DNA of 61,384 bases, the filler included, from Platydemus manokwari (taxonomy: Eukaryota): assembly GCA_037951405.1 (NCBI GenBank). It is 6 parts of 6 records of this genome, joined end to end, with 100 filler letters (N's around TTAATTAATTAA, not from the genome) between each part and the next. Parts side by side here need not be neighbours in the genome. Positions count along the whole stretch, not along the records: positions 50,146 to 61,384 come from JBBMOY010823314.1; 5 more parts are not named here. The stretch is one strand, 5' to 3'. The notes beneath the pieces were generated by a model. It made no database searches, was not told the DNA's origin, and was given only the letters and a program-made list of their open reading frames with translations. The first letter of the stretch is position 1; each line of letters begins with the position of its first letter. This document shows positions 1 to 61,384 of this stretch, one piece after another. The position numbers and the translations under genes are program-made.

Positions 1-559
1 GTTAGGTTTAAAGAAGTTTATTGCTCAAAAGTTAATTTTAATTTCAATCTAACTTTAAATATGGATATAAAATTGTGATAAAAGTTAGTATATTAAAATT
101 ATAAATAATTTGATAACTCAATAAAATATAATTGATTATTGAAACTGATTAACAATAATGAATCAAATTAAGGTACAATATTCTGTTGACAAAAAATTAC
201 TAAAAACAATACAAAAATTAATGATAGCATTTAATATAATCAGATAACTAGAATTTTATTTTGTTATTAATTATATCATAACGGATTTGATTCGGCTAGT
301 AAAATGAGGTTTATGTATTGTTCTAAAGTCTCTTAAGAAAATTTTCACGGGAACCCTATATTTGGTCAAAACTTTAAAGGTGACTAGATCTAAAGTCGTC
401 GTTGTCATGAAATGTCGATGATTTTGTGAAATTTTTGCTTTGATTTATTTTTTGGTTGGATAATTATCTTTTATTTTGCCTTTCATTATTCATTTAACCT
501 ATTTTAGATTATAAGCGTTTTATACGAATCATCATACACTTTTAAAATAATTTTATTAT

Positions 560-950
560 TAAAGTAGGATTTAGTACCCAGTAATATGTAAAAGACTACA
601 ATAAAGGTACAAACATAATCATCACCATGAGATATGGATGGAAGTAAAAACATTTTTACGTGTCTACTTTAGAATTTGAATACTTGTGTAAGGAATAGAC
701 TAAAATTAAAAGGCAATGTTTTATTTTTGGACCCTTCGTTTTAAAAGAATACATTTTATTGGATCATACATTTACAAGTGCTTACACATTTGTAACCACA
801 CAAAAAAATTAAATTACAAAACTAAAAAATAGGAATTATCCAATCAGAATAATAAAATAATTACCACTTTGATTGATAAGTTTGGAACACCTAAAACTAT
901 ATGCACCAGAATATATTTTCAGTGGGCTAATGAGGACTATTTGTAGAGAT
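560..950 (+). mobile_element. Highly decayed Gypsy-type integrase fragment
   Basis: Short residual motif DKFGTPKTIC (~875-905) resembles the integrase core FGxPxxI motif; surrounding frames are broken by stops. Confidence 0.3.
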
Positions 951-2249
951 TTTTGTTTGAAATATTATACTACTTTCAATCAATAGTGCATTCAGTTGTA
1001 AATATTAGTTCTTGACTAGTAAAATTATTAGTACCATTAATTCTTAGTATCGTGCAGCTACGATTAGTCGTTTCCAAATTCTGTTACATTTTGGTAACCC
1101 TTATAATTATCTAGAACTTGTGTTACTGAATTATTAATTACTTTTCTGTTGTTTAGAGCTTGTGCTTGTGTTCTCAATAAAATTAAAATAAGAATAAAGA
1201 CAGCGTGTTTGCAAATATAAATGTTGAGTTGTGGATGTTAACTTTGAAACTCAATGGAGTGAGTTCTATTATGATGTGTGTAATGAATCAGATTTGGGTT
1301 TATTCAAATAAACAAACAACACAAATATTAATTATTAACTGCATCGATTAAATAGATGTAAATTTAAATTTAAATTTTATACGATTTTAACTCAATCAAT
1401 GTAAGTTTGAAACAAATAAGTATGGTTATTTTGCCCGGATTGGAAGAATGCGTTATTCATCTTAATAAATTTGATTATAAATTTAAAATATTATTATTTA
1501 GGATCCAAAAGAATATGATTATTTCGGCCTATTAATTAAGCGGTTTTTTAAAAACAATAAATTTACTATATTATTTTTGTCAATAGATTATTAGTTATAA
1601 AATGATTTGTTTTATTTATGACTTTCGCTTTGGCAATAGATTATTAAGGACAAGATTTTATTTTTTCGCTACGATGCGATTTTTTGAACTCTTCGTTATC
1701 GAATTATTGTGAGAGCAGTTTGTGTTGAAAATTCATAGTCTTATATACTCACTGATGTTAAGAATTTTGAACCTAGGGTTTTTCCACCACCCTCACGAAA
1801 TTTTATCACCTTTAATATACTGGACCTTAATAGTTTATGCTTTATTGAAAGCCCATTGACATAAATTCTTAAAGTTGGAAACTTCTTAAATTTACTGACA
1901 TTGTAAATTTTATTCAAATAATTTTTTCCTTTTTATATTCTATTTTGTCTTCATTAATCAAATTTCTATAAATAATAATATTTATTGTTATTATTATTTT
2001 ATGTTTTTTCATTTTTCGCAAATATTTCAATTATTCTATACAAATGATAAATGGCATTAATAAATTACAGTTACTTTGTACAAAAATTAAAATCTTAAAT
2101 CAAAATCAGAATCAAATTAATGATCATGAAGGATTAAGTCATTATCATGTTAAGAAAGGATCATGGATGTTTAAATTTTAAATGTATTTTGAATTGATTT
2201 GTGACTCTAGGATAAATTCGAAGATTTGTTCTATCTTGACTTCAGACAT

Positions 2250-2550
2250 CTTAATATACATCCCCAGGTCTTCTTACCCCAGGTCTTTTCCTTCACTTCC
2301 AAAATCTTTTTTAAGCTGGTCCATTGCTGTCAAGTATTATGGCGCTGAATTTTATTTTTTTAGTCCTTATCCATCAGACCATAATTCCTTGTCGTGGCCT
2401 GATATCTTGTCGTAGATTCGGTACTTTTATTTCCGCGCACCTTATGAGCTAACGATGTTGGGTATTTTTTGTTCAATCTCAGTTTCTTCACGTCTGAGTA
2501 TAGCACCAGCTTGATTATATTTTTCCAACACATACACTCTCAAAACAATT
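2250..2550 (-). mobile_element. Decayed Gypsy pol (RNase H) fragment
   Basis: Minus-strand translation gives QAGAILR...KYRIYDK...HDKELW, resembling LTR-retrotransposon RNase H motifs GxGAvL and NYxiyDKELL; frameshifted. Confidence 0.4.
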
Positions 2551-5500
2551 GATTTTGAACTTTAATAGTAATGAAATTTTGGTTTTAAATCTTAATTTAT
2601 GTTGTAATGGACTTTTTACTATTGCCAATTTCGACTTTATAAATGCTTTATTTGTATAAATATTTTTATAAAGTCTAAAACAGTTATGATATGGAAACTA
2701 ACTACCCGTTATATTCGATCTATTATTCTCGAATAGTCACAAAAATACCTGCAGGATGTCCTTAGAAAATCAATGGAAATAAAATTATTTGGAGCAATTA
2801 ATAAGTCATGAAGGCCTTTGTAACCGTTGCGATAAATAGGCTTATAAACATCACAAGCCTGGCTAAAATTCAAAATCACTAGCTGATGTTAGAACAACTG
2901 TATCCTATTCATATCAAGTTGAGGATCTGTCTTCTAGCAAATATTTTCCCAGTACATTTTGTGTTGTAGCCTCTTATATGACTTTAATCATTTTACTGTA
3001 CGATCAATAATTTATGAAATTATTATATTTTAATAATATTTTAATAATGTATTTTGTATGTAAAGAAAGCACAGTGAAGGATTCAACATTGAGAAATAAT
3101 TATCGACATTGAGAAATCATTAATCAATAAAAAGAAAATATAAATTGCATCAATATTTTATTCTAATTCAACATTACACCATTTGTTTTTTTAATAATAA
3201 AACAAATCTTATTTTTTTATCTAACTGTAAAAATAAATAAATATACAAGAGATAAAAGGTTATTATTTATTATCGATAAGCATGAAATAATTATCATAAT
3301 TATCTGAAATAATTCCGGAATAATAAATGACGAGAAAAGACAAATCACGTGGGCTTAATAATAAATAATTCATGTGGGTGTTAAGACGCAATCATCACAG
3401 TAGACTATAAATACTGCGCTAAGGGTTAATCAAAACACACTAATAGATAACCAGACGACGAGTGGAAACCAACGGAACAATCGACAGATCATTTACGGAG
3501 ATAGATTAACTTTTGGCGAAATGTGGACAAACACGTTTTCGCAGATCTACGAAATTATTCTGGACTCGAAAGACATGGCAATCAATAAAATATTAACAAA
3601 CAAACATGAATATTAATAATAAATAATAAAATTAAAAAGAGAATTTTAGAAATAAAAGTAAGATAATAATTATCAATAACAAGATATATTTTAATAATAA
3701 TCAATAATAGACGTACAAAAAAACATCCATGGAATGTAAGAAAATAATATAAATAGTAAATGAATTTAGCCCAAAGCATTCTTACGATAAATAAAGTTAA
3801 AGAATCACTTGCATTATCTCACGCCAAAAATAGGGGTATAAATACCCCATAGTTATTACTGAAGTCCCCAACGAGCCAGAGTTAAATAACAATCAATATC
3901 AACCACAAACTAATTAATATGTTGAGTTAATTAATAGCTATTTTCAAATAATGAATTTTCAAGTGAATAAATTAAATTTGATAAATTAAATAATTTGATA
4001 AAAAGCACATCCGTGAAAAGTAAAATTGAAAATACACACACGCATATATATACATATATATGATAGGATAATTTACAAAAGATCTTGATTTTAAAGTGTA
4101 CAATTTGAAATACACTAATCATATATTTAAAATTGATTATTGATAAAATTTTATCCAAATAGAAATTTTCAAAATTCTTTTCATTTGAATACGATAATGT
4201 GATAGGCTGATAAAATATTACATAATTGTTGACAGAATAAAATTGTTCAAATCTAAATTAATTATTAGTTTAATAGAAAAGTTAACTGAGAATTTCATGA
4301 AACTGAAAAACAGTACTAGCAAAAAAAATTAAACTAAATCGATAAAACACATCAGAATACATTGATTAAATTGATTAAGTTGTACATTAATAAAATGTAT
4401 TCGTTACGCTTGTTATTCTATTAAAGAGGAAAACTAAGATTTATTAGACATAAACATAACAGTCTTCACGATGGGGTGGCACAAGTCTTCACTTTGACTT
4501 TTAAACTGAATTCTTAAGATGGATATTTCTGATATTCTGATTGGAATGTAAGCGAACTGTGATCTATAGAACGATCTCTAAGGAAAGACCTTTGTGCATC
4601 CCATACTTTAATGTATGGATATATCGATTATCAATGTTTATGAATAAATATTCATGTATATGTGTATCTATATTTAAATAGATCAATAGGTAGAGAAAAT
4701 CAAAAATTGAAATTATTAAATTTGCTGTTATGAAATTAGAATGCCGATGCAAGTTGTACAAATTGCCAAATGATAAGCATTATTGAATGTAGCTAGAATA
4801 TCTGTGTCCAAATGAGTGATTTAATTAAATTGTGAATTCGAGATCCTATCCGATAATGGTTAGTAATGGGGACAATAAAATCAATATTTCGGTGGATTAT
4901 TCATTAGAATATCTAAAGGTTGGATCAGGTAATCCTGTAGACAATTACATCAATCAACTTAAAATTCTACTGCTATTTCATCAAATACGAATTTTGAAAT
5001 TACTGCATCTCTGCGTAGTAATATGTTCTTATTGTGTAATTCCAATTTTTTAAAATCTTCAAAATGAATACCCTAAGAATTAACTTTGATTTGCAACTCT
5101 GATCTTCAATTTTAGGCCAATCTTTTCACTCAGCCTCTTCTTTCTCAGCTTGAATTATTTTAATAAGAATAATATTTTTGAATTAATATTTACCATATTT
5201 TTCAAATAGAAATTAAACATATAAGATGGTGTTTCTGGACTTAATGATGACAAATGATGTAGATCATGATAAGCCAGTTAGTATGACAACTCGTGAGCTG
5301 TTGTGACTGCTGTATTGACTGTGGTATTTATCTTTTTATTTTTCTTTTTTGTTTGTGTTTACAAAAACAATTTTCCATTACTATTATTGATTTTAAATTT
5401 GAATAAATATAAACATTCGACACAAGACATGGTGCTCTTAAGAGTTTAATTTTATTATTACATAATTTATTTTATTTTAAAATGTTGTTTGTTTTTCAAT

Positions 5501-50145: not shown

Positions 50146-52779
50146 TGTACAAACGGATTCCAGCTTAAATTATTAGTATAAGTTATGTCTCTTAGTAAGC
50201 TTTCATTGACTGTTTACAGATATTATTTAAATTACATTAATTAAATATTCCATTTAGTTAATTATGAAATTATAGTTTTAATGCAACAAAGATAACAAAA
50301 TCTGTTTATTTCTTGTTGAAGAAACACTTGTAATTTTTACAAGAATAATAGATCAATTCAATATTGCCATAGCCAGGTTATTATATATTAATAAAGAATC
50401 AAAGAATGAATATTATGAGAAAAAATTCAAAGTATAGCCTGGTGAATACTGAAAATTGTTTATTAAACAGAAGTGAAAATTAATATAATCGAAAATCTAA
50501 TTTAACAAATTATATCACTAATCAATAAAAGAACATTTGAATTTTTGCTCGAATGGTTCTGTCAGAGAAAAACGCAAAAAAAGGAACTTCAGATAGGCTT
50601 TTCATGCTATTAATATATCATAATTAAGAATATTAATACTTATATTTAGGATTAACTTGGGTTACACATCAAAGAAAACTCCACACTAATATCTATTATC
50701 TTCTTCAAACGAATTTTTCAACAAACTTGACTCCCGTTATTCAAATATAATTTCATTTAAACATAAATAGATTAGTAAAAAATCAAATTTTAAGTTGTGA
50801 TTTTAAAATAACAATTTTTGTAAATATGAAAGGTAATAATTAACTTATAAATACGCTGAGAATTTCGGTACACAGCCCCTAGTGTACAGTCCAGATATCA
50901 ACATTTTAAACGGTGAAATCCATCGACATTAATTGAAATATATCAATACCTTCAAAATCAAAATTCTCTAACATAAATCTCTCTGAAATCCTTCACCATA
51001 ATTATCTCTAGCTCAGTGGTTTGGGTTCAAAAGAACCGAAGGTTTCAATATGTATTTCACGAACAGGAATAACTACAATACTGAACAAATTTCATAAATA
51101 AATATAAAACAACAGCATAAAATTTTATTACTAATCTTCATTTGGCCATCTTCACATCAGCATTTGTATCTAATTTTGGTATCATGTTTTGATCTAATCT
51201 TTTATTTTTAAATTTCCAATTTGATTTATTGATTTCATGGTGATAAGTCAAACCATACGCGTTTTTCTGTGTGACTATATCCCATTTTCGAATAGTAATG
51301 TTTCATTTAGGATAGTTGTAATTGATTTATTGCCAGGCCTACATGGCTGTGTTGGCATGCAAATATTTAAAGTACTGAAATAATGGTTTCTGTGTACAAA
51401 ATCGTTTTTCTTTCGCAATATTTCATCTCTACTCAACTTATTTCCCTTCCCAAGAAGATTTTGTCCCAGTGTCTTTACAACAAACTCAGACTTGACTTAT
51501 TTTAAGTTCTTCGCTAAACTAAATTTGAATTTACTCAATAATGAATATTTCATCGATTGCATTTCTCCAGAAATTTGTCTAGTGGTTATCATCAATGATA
51601 ATTTAATGATAAGTTAACTAAAGTCATTGGTTGACATACGAAAGATTTTCTTCCTTGAAGAAAATTAAGTAACTCTTAATATGATAGTTAAAATAGTGTA
51701 AATGATACGATAGATGAATTGAGGTGATTAATTAAAGTTAAAGATGGCGCATAATCCTAGTTTTCTCTTAATACTGGACCCTGTAAAGGGAAGATGGCGG
51801 TAGATGCATCCTGAAAATGTATCGATATTGCCACGAAGCAAAGTCACATAACCGTAGCGTCGGCGCTGATATGATAATTCCTGGGCTTGGTCGACCAATT
51901 GTTAGGCAATTTGTGGAAAAGTTGATGTAATAGCCTCAAGTTATTGAAATGGTATTTGGCCAGTAAGATATTAAAAATCAATTGAGTTATTATCGATGAT
52001 GAGGATTACTTCAAAAATATATTTATTTATCTTTTTTGAAGTTAATTAAAATATATTCACATAAAAATTAAGAAGTAAACAATTATTATGAGTAATCATT
52101 ATGAGTATCATGATAGTCGTCGCAGCAATACTATTAGGCTGTGAATCAACGACTAAAGTATGAATAGAGACATAAGGCTCGATAAATCAAGATAGTTGTG
52201 AAGACAAAACTCGTGGGCTTGTTATAAAACGCAGTGATTTCTCTGAATATTTCAGCATTCTGAATTTTTTTTGTTGGAACTTGATTATGTTTGCAAAATT
52301 TCTAGTTTCACCAAAGATCACTGAAGTTGTTGAACAATTTCCATGATGACAGAATTTTTCTCTGTAGGAATTTTTTTGAACGAAATCATTTATCGAGAGC
52401 TATGTTTTCGTAAAAATTATTTAATAATGGGTTTTATTATTTTCATGTTTCCGCTAATATATTTTAATAATGATTTATCCATGATTTATTATCATTATTT
52501 TCACTTTATTATTTGATATTGGATTATTTGCTGAGTCCTAGAAACTAAGTTATTTTATTTTAAACGAGTTTTTCTTATTAGTTATTCGAGAAATTCGAAT
52601 GATTTAGTTCAGGGTTCTCCAAAGCTTACTATGAAACACACGAACATTATGACAAAATTAAGTGATACACATATTTATGATAATCGCGGTATTTTTAATG
52701 ATGTTTCATCGCGTTTTTAGATATGTTCCAGAGCGCCTAGAGTTACGAAAATTACATAGATTATTCTATTTTCTGTTAT

Positions 52780-52848
52780 CTTTGGCCCTCAAAATTTAAA
52801 AAAATCAGCAATGTGGCCCTTTGCTGAAAATGTTTGGAGACCCCTGTC
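52780..52848. mobile_element. hAT (Charlie-like) transposon terminus
   Basis: TGGCCCT...TGTGGCCCTTTGCTGAAAATGTTTGGAGACCCCTG resembles the typical hAT/Charlie terminal sequence; no partner end confirmed. Confidence 0.4.
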
Positions 52849-54182
52849 CTAAATAATTAAAAAAAATTTAAATTTACCCTTGTTTTAATTGGTATGAAAT
52901 TATATTATTCAACAAATACAAGTAGAGTTTGTTTAAGTTCATTCATGAACATTTTCATAATATTTTAATATCGAAAAAGTACAAAAACATCATGATGCTA
53001 ACAAAAAATCTAAAATAATTATTTATAATATTTGTATTTATTATTCATCTTGTTTATAAATTAGTTTTATTTTGTTTCCACATTAATCTTTAATGAAGGT
53101 AAAGAAGCATCTTTACACCGTGTCATCATTTGTAAAGACAAAAGAAAAATTAAACAATTCTCAGAAATCTAATCATATTCCTTGACAACATTCGGTCAGT
53201 GATTGGTAGAAAGTTTCTTTCATAGTCATTTTCAAAAAGATGAAAATTCGTTTAAGTGCTTTATCTGCATGAAATTGCAGTTTAAAATTGAGACTTATTA
53301 TTTATACACAGTGGAAGATTGAGAGAGACTGTTGAAGTAAACAAAGTAACTACTTTTAGAGTTTGATTAAGAATGATATTTAAATATTAAAGAAAAAACA
53401 ATTTGATGTATGTAATAGCTGTTCTAACTTGTATCGAGACGTCTTAACCACATAGTTCAACTTGACAAAAACTTCCAAACCATCAATAAAGTCAACACAA
53501 TATCAGATTTTTATCTTATTCTTTTGTTATGTTAAATAAGATATGTTTTTATTTATCTTGACTTCTAAAAGACTCTGACGAACCATTTTTGTCCATTTCA
53601 TTTGTTATATATAGTGGTATATAATAAAGAGATATAGAATTAAAACAAAATGAAACAATAATGTTTATTTGATTAAAACAAATAAATTAAAACAGAATTT
53701 ATTTAAAAGGATAGCCTGGTGCGTAAGCACATTGGCATACTAAAACATGAAAATGTAATGCAAAATAAAATATTGTCAACATACTTAATATGTAATGAAT
53801 TTTTAAATTTAAACAAAATTTTCTGTGTGATTTATATAATATTTGACAACATTTATACTAATTGATAATATGTAGTTTATATAATAATTCTAATTAATTA
53901 TAACTTTAATTATTATTTTTAATTAATTATCAAATTGAGTCACGATCATCCATCATACTCGTAACTCAATCTGTAATCTATTTTGAATTGTATTTCTTCT
54001 CCAAATGGATTTATCGTGACGGCAAAAATGCGTCAAAATTTATTGCCTATGAACGCTTTAAAATCCCGTCGGGTTTTGGGTGAATTTTTAGCTACAATAT
54101 AGTAATCATGTGTTTCGGATTACTTGATAAATTGGTCTCAAAATTAGTATATTAAAAGGATAGTTATTTCATATATTTCTTT

Positions 54183-54235
54183 TAGTCCTATCCGTCTCTG
54201 ACACTGATAAGGCCCACAGAATGCCGAAATAGAAC
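54183..54235 (+). ncRNA. Type III hammerhead ribozyme motif, copy 1 (degenerate core)
   Basis: UAGUCCUAUC (AUC site after 54192), short stem I GUC/GAC, CUGAUAA (G8 changed to A relative to CUGAUGA), stem II GGC/GCC, GAAA, then UAGAAC as a stem III partner with one mismatch. Confidence 0.6.
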
Positions 54236-54287
54236 ACCATCCGTAACCACCATCACTGCAGCTATCGCTCTTGAAGGCTCCGAGAGA

Positions 54288-54349
54288 TAGTCCTATATAT
54301 CTCTGAACCGGGATACTGATGAGGCCTGCTGGGGGTCGAAATAGGACTA
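54288..54349 (+). ncRNA. Type III hammerhead ribozyme motif, copy 2 (intact core)
   Basis: Stem III UAGUCCUAU (54288-54296)/AUAGGACUA (54341-54349); AUA cleavage triplet (after 54297); stem I UAUCUC/GGGAUA with loop UGAACC; CUGAUGA 54316-54322; stem II GGCCU/GGGUC; GAAA 54338-54341. Confidence 0.88.
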
Positions 54350-55799
54350 ATTTTTCAACAAAAAGTAGTTTATTTATTTATTTTTAATATTTTGACCACT
54401 TAACACATTACTCTTAATATATCTTAGGATTAATAACATGAAAGTAGGTATACGTTTATTTTCATCATAAAAAACGGCATAGAATTTACCATTTTGAATT
54501 ATAGTTGTAGTTTCAGCAGCCCCAAAATATATTCAAAACTTGTATTATATGAAAGGTGAAGGTTGTTTATTTTTTAATTTCTCATTTAAAACTTTAATTT
54601 GATTCTCCATAATATACTTAGTATTTATTCATAAATTGCTTCCACAAAATTCTCTCAGCGTTTACTAGTATTATTATTACATATTCCGATTTTAGATAAA
54701 TTTTATTTGTCAGGAAATCCTATACTTCATCATTCAATATTGTGCTATTCTTCATTCCAGTTCAAATGAATTGGAAGAAAACTTTAGGATTTAAATAATC
54801 GTAACGTTGGTTTACAATAAGAATACAAAAAGATAAATCGATTAAAAAAATAAAATTTAAAAAACTAATTTTTTTTAATTCCTTAATATTTGAATCCAAT
54901 AAAATAATTCAATGATGTAAAAGTTTTATTTAAAATTAATAAGAATTTATTAAATTTATCAAAATTATTTACCAACCTCAAAACTCTTGACACTTACATC
55001 ATTAGGGCACCAATCACAGGTTGAAAATCGTTCTATTTTATTAAAAAGAATCGTACTATTTCAAAATCACGTAAAAATAGAACCCAGGTGCATTTGTTTA
55101 ATTTAAGATTTTCTGATAAAAATTTGATAAATTAACTATCTTTTGTTTTTAGAATTTTTGAATGCCAAGATAAGATGGCCAATATGAATATCGTGAATAA
55201 AATTAAACTCCATTATATAATGCCAAAATTTTACAAATTATTTTTCCATTGCTCAACTAAATGAGCAAAGGCACAATCAATGACAAGTTGGTTTCTATAT
55301 TGATTGAAATTTTAGATTTTGATATTAATCCGTTAAAGGTTTGGACTAAGACATTAATATTATAGAGATTCGATCAAGATAAATGATTACCGAATAGATA
55401 AAAATTAAAGCCTTGTTTCTGAAATTATGACATCATAGAGAGTTACATAACTTTACAGTTTATTATTCGATTTTATATTTAGGAATAATCAAGAACATCA
55501 AATGATTTCCACGACATAATCACATCTTGTTAATTTTTTGTTTAAGTTTTTTATATAATATTAATGAGATTAAAAAATTGATGGAAATCGGGGATTGTTA
55601 GAAATGCCAAAATTATAAAGACACATAAAACTAATAAGAGGTAAATTGAAGGATTTCTTCATTATATTACAATTAATAACGAAATCGATAAACGAAACAG
55701 ACAAGGAATTTTAATAAATTGAAAATTTTCAAAGCAGGATTTAAATATAAACAGTAGTATTATAGGTTCGCATTAACATTTGAAAATTGATGATATAAT

Positions 55800-56940
55800 C
55801 ATCATGCAACACATCTGAACGAATCATATATTCAAATAAACATTTCATATCCGAATGATTCATAACTTCAACTATCTGAGATGTCATTACTATACCGGTG
55901 GTCATTTGAAAAATATTGTGATTCTAATAGGCTAATATTTAGCTGTTAAGGTATGAAATGAACTCCTTACAGGTCCTCCACATTGAATTATTAATGGAAC
56001 TGATAACGAATCAAAATTTTTTTTAACCACTCAAGCTCTTCAGATAAATAAATGTTTCACAAATTAATAATGTTACAATATAATAGATTTTATATCAGAC
56101 ATTTTAAGATTCGGAAATATCGAAAAAGTCAATAAGATCAAAGGTGATGGTGATCTATTTTTATGAAAATAATAAACCAAAACAATATGAGGCAAGAATA
56201 ACATACATGTACATGTTGTTCTCATTGCATTAGAATGAAATGAGAGATCATGATTGTTCCAAATCTGTTATTTCCTTGAAATCATGGATGAACCAATTTT
56301 TAGTGGGTAAAAAAATCTGTATTATTTTATATTCGTTCATATTTTTACCCTAAAGTAAATGAATCGATATCCACTTTCTAAATTCAACACTGAAAACATC
56401 AAATTTCTTACTGATAAAGTTTTAGATAACAAGCATTCCCTTCCAAAAACTGTGTTGAACTCCAAAGAACATTTTTATGGGTATAGCAACATTTTAAAAT
56501 TTATTTCAAACAATTTTAGAGGAACAGCTACAGTAAAACAACGAGATTGCAACCCAAATCAATTCATATTTCCTAATGATCTGAAAACCATAACACTGCA
56601 TTCTAAAGAATTATCCAGTCATTTTGGTAAAGGAGCTAAAAGGTTCGATTTAAGATATGAAACAATATGTGACGTTTCAGCACTTTCTCAACGAAACCTG
56701 TTGTAAGAGTAAATCACGGAACTTCCATTTGTATTTTTCAAAGAATGAAATCGAAACTATATTTTCAAAATCCAGTCGTTCCAACGTTCAAATAATTGTG
56801 AATTGTGTGAAATTACAGAAAACTCAGCTAATCCATAAATTGATGAATTTCTTCATTGTCGATCTCAAAACGAAACATGTGAATATAAACACAAAGCTCA
56901 ACATATTAATAAATTTTAATAACAGAAACGATTTCAACTC
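55800..56940 (+). mobile_element. Probable decayed Penelope-like retroelement (RT C-terminus + GIY-YIG endonuclease)
   Basis: Faint motifs in PLE order: INGTDNESKFF (cf. IWxGxxxELxxF), NRYP (cf. NGYP), SALSQRNLL, SRSNVQIIVNCVK (cf. GIY-YIG N-terminal SxNVxYxIxCxxC). Heavily degenerate. Confidence 0.4.
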
Positions 56941-56954
56941 TATCATCTTAATTA

Positions 56955-59900
56955 TTAAGTAATACCATGGGCAAATATCATCACGATTCCAGGCTGTACT
57001 ATCATATCAGGAGACATATGACCATTTTCTGTTGCTAAAATGATTATCGCTTGTTTGTCTATAAATAAAAGATAAAAATCTTTATTTGAAATAGGCAAAT
57101 TCATAAATATAAATAAATATATATTCCAAACAGTAATTGGGACAATAAAATAAAAATCCAAATATAAGCATTCAATAATGCTACTGATCAATTTTTATTA
57201 GTAAACAGTAAAATGTCTTTGAAAAATGTGTGAAGTTTTCGAATAATGAAGGTATTAACTATTACACTATACAGGATTGGAACGAAAGACTTGTCCGATA
57301 GAAAACAATATTTATTTAACTAATAAAGACAATATGTAGATTGGAAATATAAACAAAACACCATTCGTCTGTAAATCTAAACAATTTCAATGTTTTATGA
57401 AGAAATATTTATTTTAAATGCATTATTAAATCCTTTTTTAAAATGTTTAATTTCTATCTTATAATTTCAGATAGCTATCATTTAAAAAATATTATTCTGT
57501 GGAATATTATGAAGTTTAAGCGAAGTGATTTAAAAAAGCTGACGTATTTTTTTGTGGAAATATGGAATGAATGCGATAACGCTCGACCGCATGCGGCACT
57601 TTTAAATCAAAATAAGCTTGGTGAGATCGGTTTTACGGTTATACTGCATCCACCATATTCCCTAGACCTGGCCCCTTCAGACTATTACCTGTTTTCTCTG
57701 AAAAACTCACTTCATGGAAAAACGTATTACTCCTCTGAAGAGGTTTACGATGATTTGAGAAAGTGATTCGATTCAAAACCTGCGGAATTCTATGAAAACG
57801 GCATAAAGTAATTCGCAGAACGCTGGAAAAAATGTGTGGACCTTAAATGTGACTATTTTCAACATTTCATATTTAGAGACAAATGATGTTTTGTTTATAT
57901 TTCTCTATTTACATATTTTATTTATTGGTTAAAAAAATATTATTTTCTATAGGATAAGACAATATACGAAAATTATTTCAAAAATTTCTCACAAAATGCA
58001 AAACGAGAAACAATTTTTAGATAAATTTATTATAAACAATAAAATGGCATACACAGACAATTGTAAGAGTTCAGATGGTATACTGATTGAGCAACAGTTG
58101 ATTATTCCGACTGACAGTTAGCACAGCCAGTAACAGACATGGAATCGATTACACCATCTAATTATTCTCTCATTGTCTTATTATAACACTGTCATTTCAT
58201 TCACATTGGCTGTGGGGAAATGTTGTAATTGTATTTTGGTTCATTATCCATTTATCCATCACAATAATAATAAATTCCTTTTAAGGCATAAAAATACTAC
58301 TTAAAAGATACACTATATATAGCTCATTTGGATTTCACGTATTCTACTACTTATAAAATATCATAATGATATAGCACAGTCAATTTTCAATTTATTCTAT
58401 TATTCTTCTCTTAATATAACCATTCAATTTCATTATTCTCTTCCCATAGTTTAATACGAGTATCGGTTTTGATGAAATATGCAGACGAATAATTTGAATT
58501 TCGTAACATTGATACTGCTACGATATCTACTAGCAATTGAGATTTCCTGATTACAGACAGTTCGGAAATGTGATAATACTGATATCTAATAGTCATTACT
58601 GACACAGTAACCCTCCGAATTGAATTTACATCTTCTAATCAAGAGCCTACAAGAAAAAGATGACTGAATAATTTTCTTTGATGAAACACATTACATTTTC
58701 TTCATACACTTCATGATTGCAGATAATGTTTTTATCTCTCAACGATATTGAATACAAGAAGATGAGTAAATAGATATTTAGATCCACCAATACTGTGTTA
58801 TACAAACACATTATTAAATCAACCTTCGTGAAAGAGTCATAAATCGATTATATTCACAGGTCAGTAATATATCCAGATTTCAGAAAATTTATCAGAATTC
58901 TCCAAATGTGATAGTGATAAAATTAGCTAAAATAATCGATAATGGGTAATAATAATTATCGGAGTTTTAAAAGTAATCGAAAATTAAAAAAAAACAACAA
59001 TAAAGTAGGATTTAAAAAAGCGTAAATCTTATAATTTGTTTGACTGCACTATCAATATTATTGATATTATTGTTTATTTTCATGATATATTTTCACCACA
59101 ATACCAGTAAACCAAATTGTAATATCACAACTGTATTAGTTAATGATATGTTCACGTTCTGAATATTGCTTCTGAAATCACAAAAAGGACAAATATTTCA
59201 AAGCAGTTCCAGCTATTTTATATCCAGCATCATATCGTTATATTTCCAACTGGAATTCCGATACATGATCATTACTTCTAATAATGTCCAATGTATATCT
59301 TAGAGATTATCTTATCAGTATCAAATTCCACTGATTATTAGCATATGAAACATCAAAATGTTATTCAAAAAAATCAAAAATCTATTTATCTCGAAATCCT
59401 TACTTTAAAGGATTTTAAAAGTTTAATTAGCCAATTCAAAACATGAAAAATAGCCGCAAATAGCCGAGAAATATAGAGGTGATTGTAAAAATATAAAACC
59501 ATTTATGGTCACCTTTTTACAATTCTGTATGTTCATAATGGACATAATGATGCAATTCTCTCCTTTATAAATTAAGTTTCGAGCCATTAAAAGCTTTAGC
59601 CAAACACATCAACGTGGTTAGTATTGAAATAATATTTTCAATCATTTCCATTCAGGATTACTGCTTTCACAGACGTTTGCAGAAACCTTATGAAAAATCC
59701 ATTATTTGTTGAAAGATACAAATCAATTAATCAATATAATCGAATTAATTACAGCTTCAATTCATTCGTTGTTTAGAAATGTAACCCAATTGTCTAGAGA
59801 ATTATTGGCCGAAATTTGTCACTGGATGATTATTGTCGACCATTTCGAATACATCGAATTCGAATTCTGATAATGTATAATATAATAATCGCTGGAAGTT

Positions 59901-60610
59901 CAACATACAAATATATTTGATGAGGTTTTCTATGTTAGATTTCCGTTCAATCACTTATTTCTGTTCTCCTATGAAATCCCCGCTAATCTCAGATGAAAAC
60001 AATTTAATATTTTATACATGATGAACAAATTAATGGATATTTCATTGAACTGCATGATTTATCGTCTAATACAGACTAGGATAGCTTCAACTCATAAATT
60101 CCCATTAACCCTCATTATTCAAACGTGTAAATTTATTAATATTCGGGAAGTGGTCATTATATGGTATATCGGGTTCAATTTAATGTTTATAATTAACGCT
60201 TTTCATTTTGACTGTAAATATATTTAATGCCTATTCATTATTTTCGATCTGGAAAGAGTGATCTATTACACGACTACAACAATCAACCAGTGCTATTAAA
60301 AATTGGATTTAATACAACAAGTAGAATCAATTGAATAATATCGATAGAAAAACGTATAGGCTTACTAGGCACTCGACGAATTATAAAATTTTCAAAAGCA
60401 TATCTATTTGCTTGTCGGCTTTCTAAACTTCGTAATCCAATGGGCCATCTTCGTTCATGAGCATTATCCATCAACAATAGTACATGGGCAGGTGGGCAGC
60501 CAGTTTCAAGAATTGACCGCTTAATAACTGTTTGAAGAAGTGTATCTGGAGTGGAAATAATCCCACCCCATCGAACTTCTTGAGCAATTGGGAGATTATT
60601 GATCCACAAT
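56955..60610 (-). CDS. RNF41: E3 ubiquitin-protein ligase NRDP1 (RNF41), last two exons; 5' part outside the window
   Basis: Exon 60610-60366 (VRWGGIISTPDTLLQTVIKRSILETGCP...MDNAHERRWPIGLRSLESRQANR) joins by a phase-1 GT-AG intron to exon 57058-56955 (NKQAIIILATENGHMSPDMIVQPGIVMIFAHGIT*). This is the NRDP1 USP8-interacting C-terminal domain. Confidence 0.95.
57572..57886 (+). mobile_element. Mariner (DD34D) transposase 3' fragment in RNF41 intron
   Basis: DNARPH...LHPPYSLDLAPSDYYLF...FYENGIK*FAERWKKCVDLKCDYF, with two in-frame stops. Confidence 0.92.
59530..59900 (-). mobile_element. Decayed LINE (CR1/L2-like) RT fragment in RNF41 intron
   Basis: Minus strand DKFRPII (cf. NYRPIS), then CLAKAFN (cf. 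DLxKAFD) and ELHHY. Confidence 0.4.
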
Positions 60611-61295
60611 CTGAATATAATTTTTGGCTTGAATAAAATTGAACACAAAAACAAATTATATTTACATTTTCTGGACATTCAGGAATAAATTAAAATTTCA
60701 AGGCAAAATAATTTCGTGTAAATCAATAAAAGTTGGGGAAAAAGTAATAAAAATAATATATATATAAAGACATATTCATATTTCCAGTATATTTTGCTTC
60801 TTATCTTTATATACTTAGAGACTCACATGGTAGGGCATTTTCACAGGAACCTAATTACCGTGATTTAGGAAGACACTTAAAGTTAACATGTTTTTTTAGA
60901 AATGGTAACCAAATATATCTGTATTACTAAAATTAACGTCTAGATTTAAGGAAAATATTATTAAAGATCCAAGATAGAACGATATAATAATAATCCACTT
61001 GAATGCTCACGAGAACAGCTCAAGTCTATCCCGGATACGACGTTATTGTGCAATTACATCACAAGCACGCTGATTTCAACAAAATGAAAATGATTGATTA
61101 AATTATATCAAAGAATAACACAATGTTTTCTTGAACGATTCCATTTCAATTTGGGTGAAAATGTATCAATCAAGAAATCCATTTGGAAATTTATCGACAA
61201 AAGAAAATTTATTTTTTCTCAATCATTTCCAGTTTCTTAGATAATTTATTCAGATTTTCCATTTCATCAGATTTCCATGGACCAAATAAAACGAA

Positions 61296-61318
61296 TATAT
61301 ATATATATATATATATAT
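61296..61318. repeat. (AT)n microsatellite
   Basis: Direct dinucleotide run. Confidence 0.9.
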
Positions 61319-61384
61319 GCTAAAACTAAAATACATCATTGCTTGATTAAAACAATATTTGAAAGGTTTTATTTTTTCTTCCTT

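Follow-up and report, generated by a model that had tools for sequence, protein, structure and literature searches.

Most of the hammerhead ribozymes in metazoan genomes are of type I, and they sit in tandem non-LTR retrozymes, in Penelope-like elements and in Sm-alpha (PMC7229834, PMC7761336). Type III is the topology of plant retrozymes, viroid-like RNAs and some HDV-like agents (PMC7229834, PMC7761336, PMC7936874). A review also ascribes type III hammerheads to elements of 'bacteria or insects', with a 2010 paper and work in preparation as the sources (PMC7761336). Our subject is a pair of hammerheads in the type III layout from the genome of Platydemus manokwari (GCA_037951405.1). It lies within a stretch of 61,384 nucleotides that joins six parts of this assembly (the window, along which all positions are counted), in an 11-kb piece taken from JBBMOY010823314.1 (positions 50,146 to 61,384).

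With the plant LTR retrozymes (Cervera, Urbina and de la Pena 2016, PMC4918200) the Platydemus repeat shares two type III hammerheads on the same strand; both kinds of element are non-coding, non-autonomous and multi-copy, and both have one-ribozyme ('solo') derivatives. The plant elements differ in their LTRs of ~350 bp, tRNA-Met primer-binding site, polypurine tract and 4-bp target duplications, and they place 600-1000 nt between their ribozymes, with a GC content >55% and circles that are stable and branched or rod-like (PMC4918200). In the Platydemus repeat, by contrast, which belongs to an animal host, the repeated part is ~60 nt, the two ribozymes are spaced 105 nt apart, and unique, AT-rich arms lie on either side. 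The metazoan non-LTR retrozymes (Cervera and de la Pena 2020, PMC7229834; Li et al. 2026, 10.64898/2026.07.22.740005) share the animal host, the short unit and the low-GC surroundings. Like our repeat they have no LTR, primer-binding site or polypurine tract, they come in monomer and dimer forms, and a small self-cleaved RNA is predicted for them. Their hammerheads, however, are type I, often with a weak helix III and acting as dimers, and they are organised as head-to-tail arrays of whole units with a Penelope-like link (PMC7229834; preprint 10.64898/2026.07.22.740005). The Platydemus pair differs from them in being type III with a helix III of 7-9 bp, in having only its cassette duplicated, and in its unique, conserved arms.

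Hammerheads carried in short, high-copy interspersed repeats are also known from the SINE-like Sm-alpha elements of Schistosoma and from Aedes, Nematostella and Xenopus (Perreault et al. 2011, PMC3088659), but these are type I, and Sm-alpha includes a tRNA-like part (PMC3088659). Type III topology, with helices I and II closed, is shared with viroid-like satellite RNAs, with HDV-like circular RNAs from termites and toads (PMC7936874) and with the retroviroid-like element of carnation; the last of these also resembles our repeat in that DNA copies of a small ribozyme unit are known. All of these replicate as RNAs of 275-1700 nt and have ribozymes in both polarities; the Platydemus repeat, in contrast, exists as hundreds of genomic DNA copies, with the ribozyme on one strand and a unit of ~105 nt.

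A repeat with a type III pair, a unit of ~105 nt and conserved arms fits neither described class of retrozyme. What appears to be new is an animal repeat-borne hammerhead that combines an unusual topology with a very short unit and an arms-plus-cassette architecture. The locus is probably one copy of a high-copy, interspersed, non-autonomous repeat of ~300 bp, built from a left arm, one or two type III units and a right arm, and the repeat is best read as retrozyme-like in its type III hammerhead cassette.

The hammerhead pair

The downstream unit, copy 2, has a complete core (C3-U4-G5-A6-U7-G8-A9 and G12-A13-A14), an A15.1-U16.1 pair formed by A54341 and U54296, and a non-G residue at H17; its parts are set out in Table 1. 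Of its helices, I and II are closed by loops and III is open; it is therefore of type III. Folded alone, its 62 nt give the three-way junction both as the MFE and as the centroid structure (-19.9 kcal/mol, z -2.05). By its sequence copy 2 satisfies every consensus feature of a type III hammerhead (Rfam RF00008, clan CL00010), and self-cleavage is predicted. The first-pass annotation had seen here a full core and three stems in type III layout, with which sequence and MFE agree, and had put the two cleavage sites after 54192 and 54297, which is the predicted spacing of 105 nt.

Table 1. Features of the hammerhead element and its neighbourhood (positions in the window). Depths are summed contig depths; family letters are contig variants at copy 1 positions.
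Feature	Position	Strand	Details
AT-rich left arm of family	54101-54182 (at least 54112-54182)	+	Depth 500-2700 vs 6 in single-copy flank
Copy 1, decayed paralogous type III hammerhead	54183-54237	+	Sequence, fold, copy-to-copy alignment, family letters
Copy 1 5' arm	54183-54191	+	Identical to copy 2 5' arm
Copy 1 H17	C54192	+	A15.1-U16.1 is A54229-U54191
Family letter	54193		C>T, 95% of depth; U1.1 pairs with A54203
Copy 1 core CUGAUAA	54204-54210	+	G8>A at 54209
Family letter	54209		A>G, 48% of depth; G8 restored
Family letter	54222		T>G, 82% of depth; pairs with C54214, helix II C-G
Family letter	54233		A>G, 45% of depth; pairs with C54187, helix III G-C
GC-rich spacer between ribozymes	54238-54287	+	Depth 500-2900; many C>T variants
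Copy 2, intact type III hammerhead	54288-54349	+	Sequence, MFE fold, descriptor scan, family variants
Copy 2 helix III 5' arm	54288-54296	+	9 nt, ends in U16.1
Copy 2 H17	A54297	+	Predicted cleavage between A54297 and U54298
Copy 2 helix I hairpin	54298-54315	+	6 bp, 6-nt loop
Copy 2 core CUGAUGA	54316-54322	+	
Copy 2 helix II hairpin	54323-54337	+	4-5 bp, G10.1-C11.1 closing pair
Copy 2 GAAA	54338-54341	+	GAA at 54338-54340
Copy 2 helix III 3' arm	54341-54349	+	Complementary to 5' arm
AT-rich right arm of family	54350-54411	+	Depth 3000-4900; family end ~54405-54411
RNF41/NRDP1-type exon	56958-57191	-	Pfam USP8_interact, E 7e-11; stop codon 56955-56957
Mariner-type remnant in RNF41-type intron	57344-57903		38-nt inverted repeats 57344-57381/57866-57903, 87% complementary
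RNF41/NRDP1-type E3 ubiquitin ligase exon	60286-60678	-	Pfam USP8_interact, E 4.7e-31

Copy 1, upstream, is another matter. The traits by which it had first been picked out (the same arm, CUGAUAA and a shrunken stem I) are all there in the sequence. Its helix I has 4 bp, with 7 nt fewer than in copy 2 and a C.A mismatch at 1.1/2.1; there is a C.U mismatch in helix II (54222) and an A.C mismatch in the 3' arm of helix III (54233), and no hammerhead structure was obtained when copy 1 was folded. Four of its defects are mended to the hammerhead consensus by the family letters of Table 1, and in one contig the sequence at copy 1 has an unbroken CUGAUGA and a helix I of greater length. Because these letters and this contig restore the consensus, the ancestral copy 1 was a full hammerhead, of which the present locus carries a decayed version.

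Could a hammerhead likeness have arisen by chance inside a GC-rich patch? Our type III descriptor called for CUGAUGA, for a helix II hairpin next to it and then GAAA, for a helix I hairpin, likewise adjacent, with U and a non-G before it, and for a helix III opening with A15.1-U16.1; descriptor searches (RNAmotif) are also used by laboratories that catalogue genomic hammerheads (PMC7229834). Its only match in the 11-kb piece has H17 at 54297 and stems of 6, 5 and 9 bp. In simulated sequence of the same composition 0.028 matches per Mb, counting both strands, are expected for a loose form of the descriptor (stems no shorter than 4/3/4 bp), and a strict form (at least 6/4/7 bp) had 0 matches in 300,000 simulated CUGAUGA contexts, which is <0.3 per Gb. 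What speaks for chance is the Infernal search with Rfam models, to which the first-pass annotation had looked for confirmation and which gave none: at E<=10 the Rfam 15 covariance models matched no hammerhead family on the 11 kb, on 231 nt or on 74 nt, and no other ribozyme on either strand of the same segments. In a control run on metagenome loci the only match was to RAGATH-1-hammerhead, on an unrelated contig; the search can thus report models of hammerhead type, although this is not a type III control. Possible reasons for the miss are the AUA triplet with U-A at 15.2/16.2 (the usual being GUC and C-G), the long helix III, or speed filters. Set against it are the strict expectation for stems of such length, a second, paralogous copy 105 nt upstream and hundreds of related copies with an intact core, and we reject a chance motif as very improbable.

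In a metagenome contig that a pattern scan for the family had brought up by chance (L015, 233-351, minus strand) we noted a sub-threshold RAGATH-1 match of 29.2 bits (E 0.35), which reads CUGAUGAG...CGAAA and has helix III closed. It is probably a bacterial or phage type I hammerhead, unrelated to the Platydemus pair.

The repeat family and its surroundings

The 11-kb piece is animal DNA, because it contains exons of the RNF41/NRDP1 type, whose best named relative is avian RNF41 (56% identity). An invertebrate genome had been proposed from the sequence, and these exons bear out the animal part of that proposal. The hammerhead element lies ~2.6 kb past the RNF41-type stop codon, on the opposite strand. 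In the mariner-type remnant of the RNF41-type intron, an ORF (57443-57766) has the transposase C-terminal motif DNARPH...PYSLDLAPSDYYLF. The piece yielded no reverse transcriptase, endonuclease or tRNA gene. It has a second GC-richer bin at 51746-51945 (0.43), where an ORF (51731-51898, minus strand) has no Pfam match. A contig from a metagenome assembly (L056; ENA ERZ27256860, contig k141_2284923) encodes at 250-549 a fragment of 99 aa that has 94% identity to the RNF41 exon of the window; at the DNA level the exon identity is 83%, and the flanks do not align. The contig looks like host DNA, from a related animal, that entered the metagenome assembly.

The extent of the repeat was read from contigs of the genome's own public run, aligned to 54100-54450 at 80% likeness; all the family data come from this one run, the only public one to contain the locus, which is kept as contigs, may derive from the sample behind the assembly and is not independent of it. 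From 54100 to 54411 the locus is covered by 561 contigs, with a summed depth of 500-4900, and from 54412 the depth is a flat 6.04, so the pair is part of an interspersed repeat of high copy number. Past 54405, 47 contigs continue into AT-rich sequence that is unrelated. The start of the left arm is not fixed by depth, as the aligned stretch opens at 54100. Conserved-segment depth over single-copy depth gives a copy number of, roughly, hundreds; the first-pass annotation had proposed a genome-wide check of copy number. The GC-richer island that it had pointed out in AT-rich DNA is real too (0.44 in 54146-54345 vs ~0.27 in the surroundings and as the average of the piece). A search of the 11-kb piece found no further copy of the repeat.

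The family is old and heterogeneous, since 289 of the 561 contigs are <90% alike and many have internal deletions. Joints at 54197>54300 and 54199>54302 skip ~102 nt and make one-hammerhead versions, which probably arose by recombination between the two units, much as solo LTRs do. In copy 2, loop 2 (54328-54333) has five variable positions, with indels, among the 40 of 90 variants listed; none of those listed falls in CUGAUGA, GAAA, positions 16.1/17 or loop 1. At 54289, in the outermost pair of helix III, the letter is C in 81% of the depth, and helix III is typically 7 bp. Some changes preserve pairing: 54311 G>A turns a G.U with U54302 into A-U in helix I, and 54336 T>C turns G54324.U into G-C in helix II. 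Between the paralogues the pair 1.2/2.2 shows a compensatory double change, G-C in copy 1 and A-U in copy 2. Such events are few and are read from summary variant tables, not from aligned copies; the match between copy 2 variation and what constraint on the fold would predict is a thin one. The right arm looks no less conserved than the ribozyme, so that the conservation may stem from a recent amplification and not from selection on catalysis.

Beyond this genome, a scan of metagenome, prokaryote-genome and viral collections for the core and 3' arm gave 55 loci, which are chance matches because the family's 5' arm is absent from all of them. A 77-aa stop-free frame on the minus strand had no homologue in a protein search, and exact look-ups of neighbouring ORFs returned no record; none of these searches brought up a copy of the repeat in another genome.

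Cleavage, folding and mode of copying

How might such a cassette work? The founder of the family had a pair of consensus type III hammerheads on the same strand, at a distance of ~105-112 nt. In a plus-strand transcript an intact hammerhead would cut itself 3' of H17, leaving a 2',3'-cyclic phosphate and a 5'-OH, and members with two intact units would release an RNA of ~105-112 nt. Because the halves of helix III, together with the scissile site, would lie at the ends of that RNA, ligation into a circle would re-create one full hammerhead, as in retrozymes. At the present locus only copy 2 is predicted to be active. A single cut at 54297/54298 would follow, and the release of a 105-nt unit, as originally envisaged, is not expected here because copy 1 is dead (G8>A).

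Context matters to the fold. In a transcript of 54240-54380 the active fold of copy 2 is the MFE, with a mean pair probability of 0.69. Once the dead copy 1 is included, in the two-copy context of 167 nt, that fold is less favourable than the MFE by 15 kcal/mol, and in the whole element by 5.6 kcal/mol. In the competing fold the 5' arm of copy 1 pairs with the 3' arm of copy 2, and a hairpin of 54282-54288 (the 3' end of the spacer) with 54298-54304 hides the copy 2 cleavage site. Cleavage at the locus would thus depend on co-transcriptional folding. That the family is active today, with two-unit members releasing and circularising an RNA of ~105-112 nt, we regard as doubtful.

A rival reading of the pair makes it a true retrozyme, in which the circularised ~105-nt RNA is itself the template for retrotransposition and the genomic copies are cDNA insertions. 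Two same-strand type III hammerheads with identical 5' arms of helix III, from which a circle would re-form a full ribozyme, are what such an element should have; the copy number is high, one-unit and two-unit versions exist, and type I families with consensus lengths down to 51-98 bp have been reported (bioRxiv 10.64898/2026.07.22.740005). The difficulty lies in the arms. They are conserved beyond the cleavage sites and match the cassette in abundance; what is copied is therefore the whole ~300 bp, more than the circle, and not the cleaved RNA. Since they travel with the cassette outside both cleavage sites, the template for transposition would not be the cleaved unit alone, and a circle-only intermediate does not explain them. 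LTRs, a primer-binding site and a long purine tract are also missing: the LTR search found a direct repeat confined to the ~60-nt ribozyme, with unrelated flanks around the two units, no tRNA-Met primer-binding motif matched within 3 mismatches in the element, and the purine run before copy 2 is the 6-nt GAGAGA only. The array at the locus is no longer than two units, the second of which adjoins a unique arm, and Tandem Repeats Finder reported no array here. Lastly, the 105-nt monomer (54193-54297) is neither rod-like nor stable, with 40-46% of its bases paired and a z of about +1.4 vs shuffles, linear or circular; in retrozyme RNAs >70% of nucleotides are double-stranded (PMC4918200). A true retrozyme is, we think, unlikely. 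What survives of the retrozyme-like interpretation in the first-pass annotation is a real type III pair in repetitive, presumably mobile DNA; the LTRs, primer-binding site and array that would complete it are absent. The equal abundance of arms and cassette speaks for a relic, in which the element moves as DNA or by some other ribozyme-free route (MITE-like, or as a Helentron/DINE-like composite of arms and internal repeats) and its hammerheads are inherited, inactive passengers. Many copies are decayed or deleted, as the 289 divergent contigs attest, copy 1 is dead at this locus, and the two ends of the element share AGTAAT..GTGTT just where depth turns single-copy. That inverted-repeat likeness is not significant vs shuffles, however, and there is no clear target-site duplication, while the copy 2 variants and the consensus-restoring letters of copy 1 fit a master copy with working ribozymes. 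We hold the relic to be improbable as well, if a shade less so.

Some better-known architectures can be set aside. A plant-type LTR retrozyme is rejected for want of LTRs and a primer-binding site and for the 105-nt spacing. The metazoan non-LTR class does not fit an element of type III topology without an array, whose monomer is not highly self-complementary. A Penelope-like terminal hammerhead, which is a minimal type I ribozyme in the pseudo-LTR beside an RT/GIY-YIG ORF, is rejected because the 11-kb piece has no reverse transcriptase or endonuclease ORF and helix III is long and open.

As to the ends themselves, 54101-54114 reads AGTAAT(CAT)GTGTT, the reverse complement of 54400-54412 reads AGTAATGTGTT, and depth drops at both. 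The similarity hints at a short terminal inverted repeat, at a level that is not significant on one copy; local alignment of the arms was no better than shuffles, and this single copy has no clear target-site duplication. Depth climbs toward the right end and one contig is a 5'-truncated copy, which hints at target-primed reverse transcription, again without significance on one copy. Folded whole, the element has a z of -1.0. No tRNA-like or SINE head and no Pol III box were found. Helix III of copy 2 is followed at once by the T5 run with which the right arm opens (54350-54355), and a T4 run (54180-54183) precedes copy 1. These could be Pol III terminators; such runs are common in DNA this AT-rich.

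What the repeat may mean

Our preferred reading remains a ~300-bp interspersed repeat that carries a retrozyme-like type III cassette between its arms. If its ribozymes are inactive, this is an ordinary decayed repeat with a ribozyme fossil. If they are active, mobile elements that bear ribozymes would prove more varied than described, and the animal (insect) reservoir that has been suggested for type III hammerheads, so far 'in preparation' (PMC7761336), would gain a concrete case. Were the family also to prove a circularising one, it would be the first characterised family of its type III kind in Metazoa, and its circles would be among the smallest hammerhead circles. It would then bear on the proposed transfer of type III hammerheads from insects or bacteria to plant retrozymes or viroid-like RNAs (PMC7761336).
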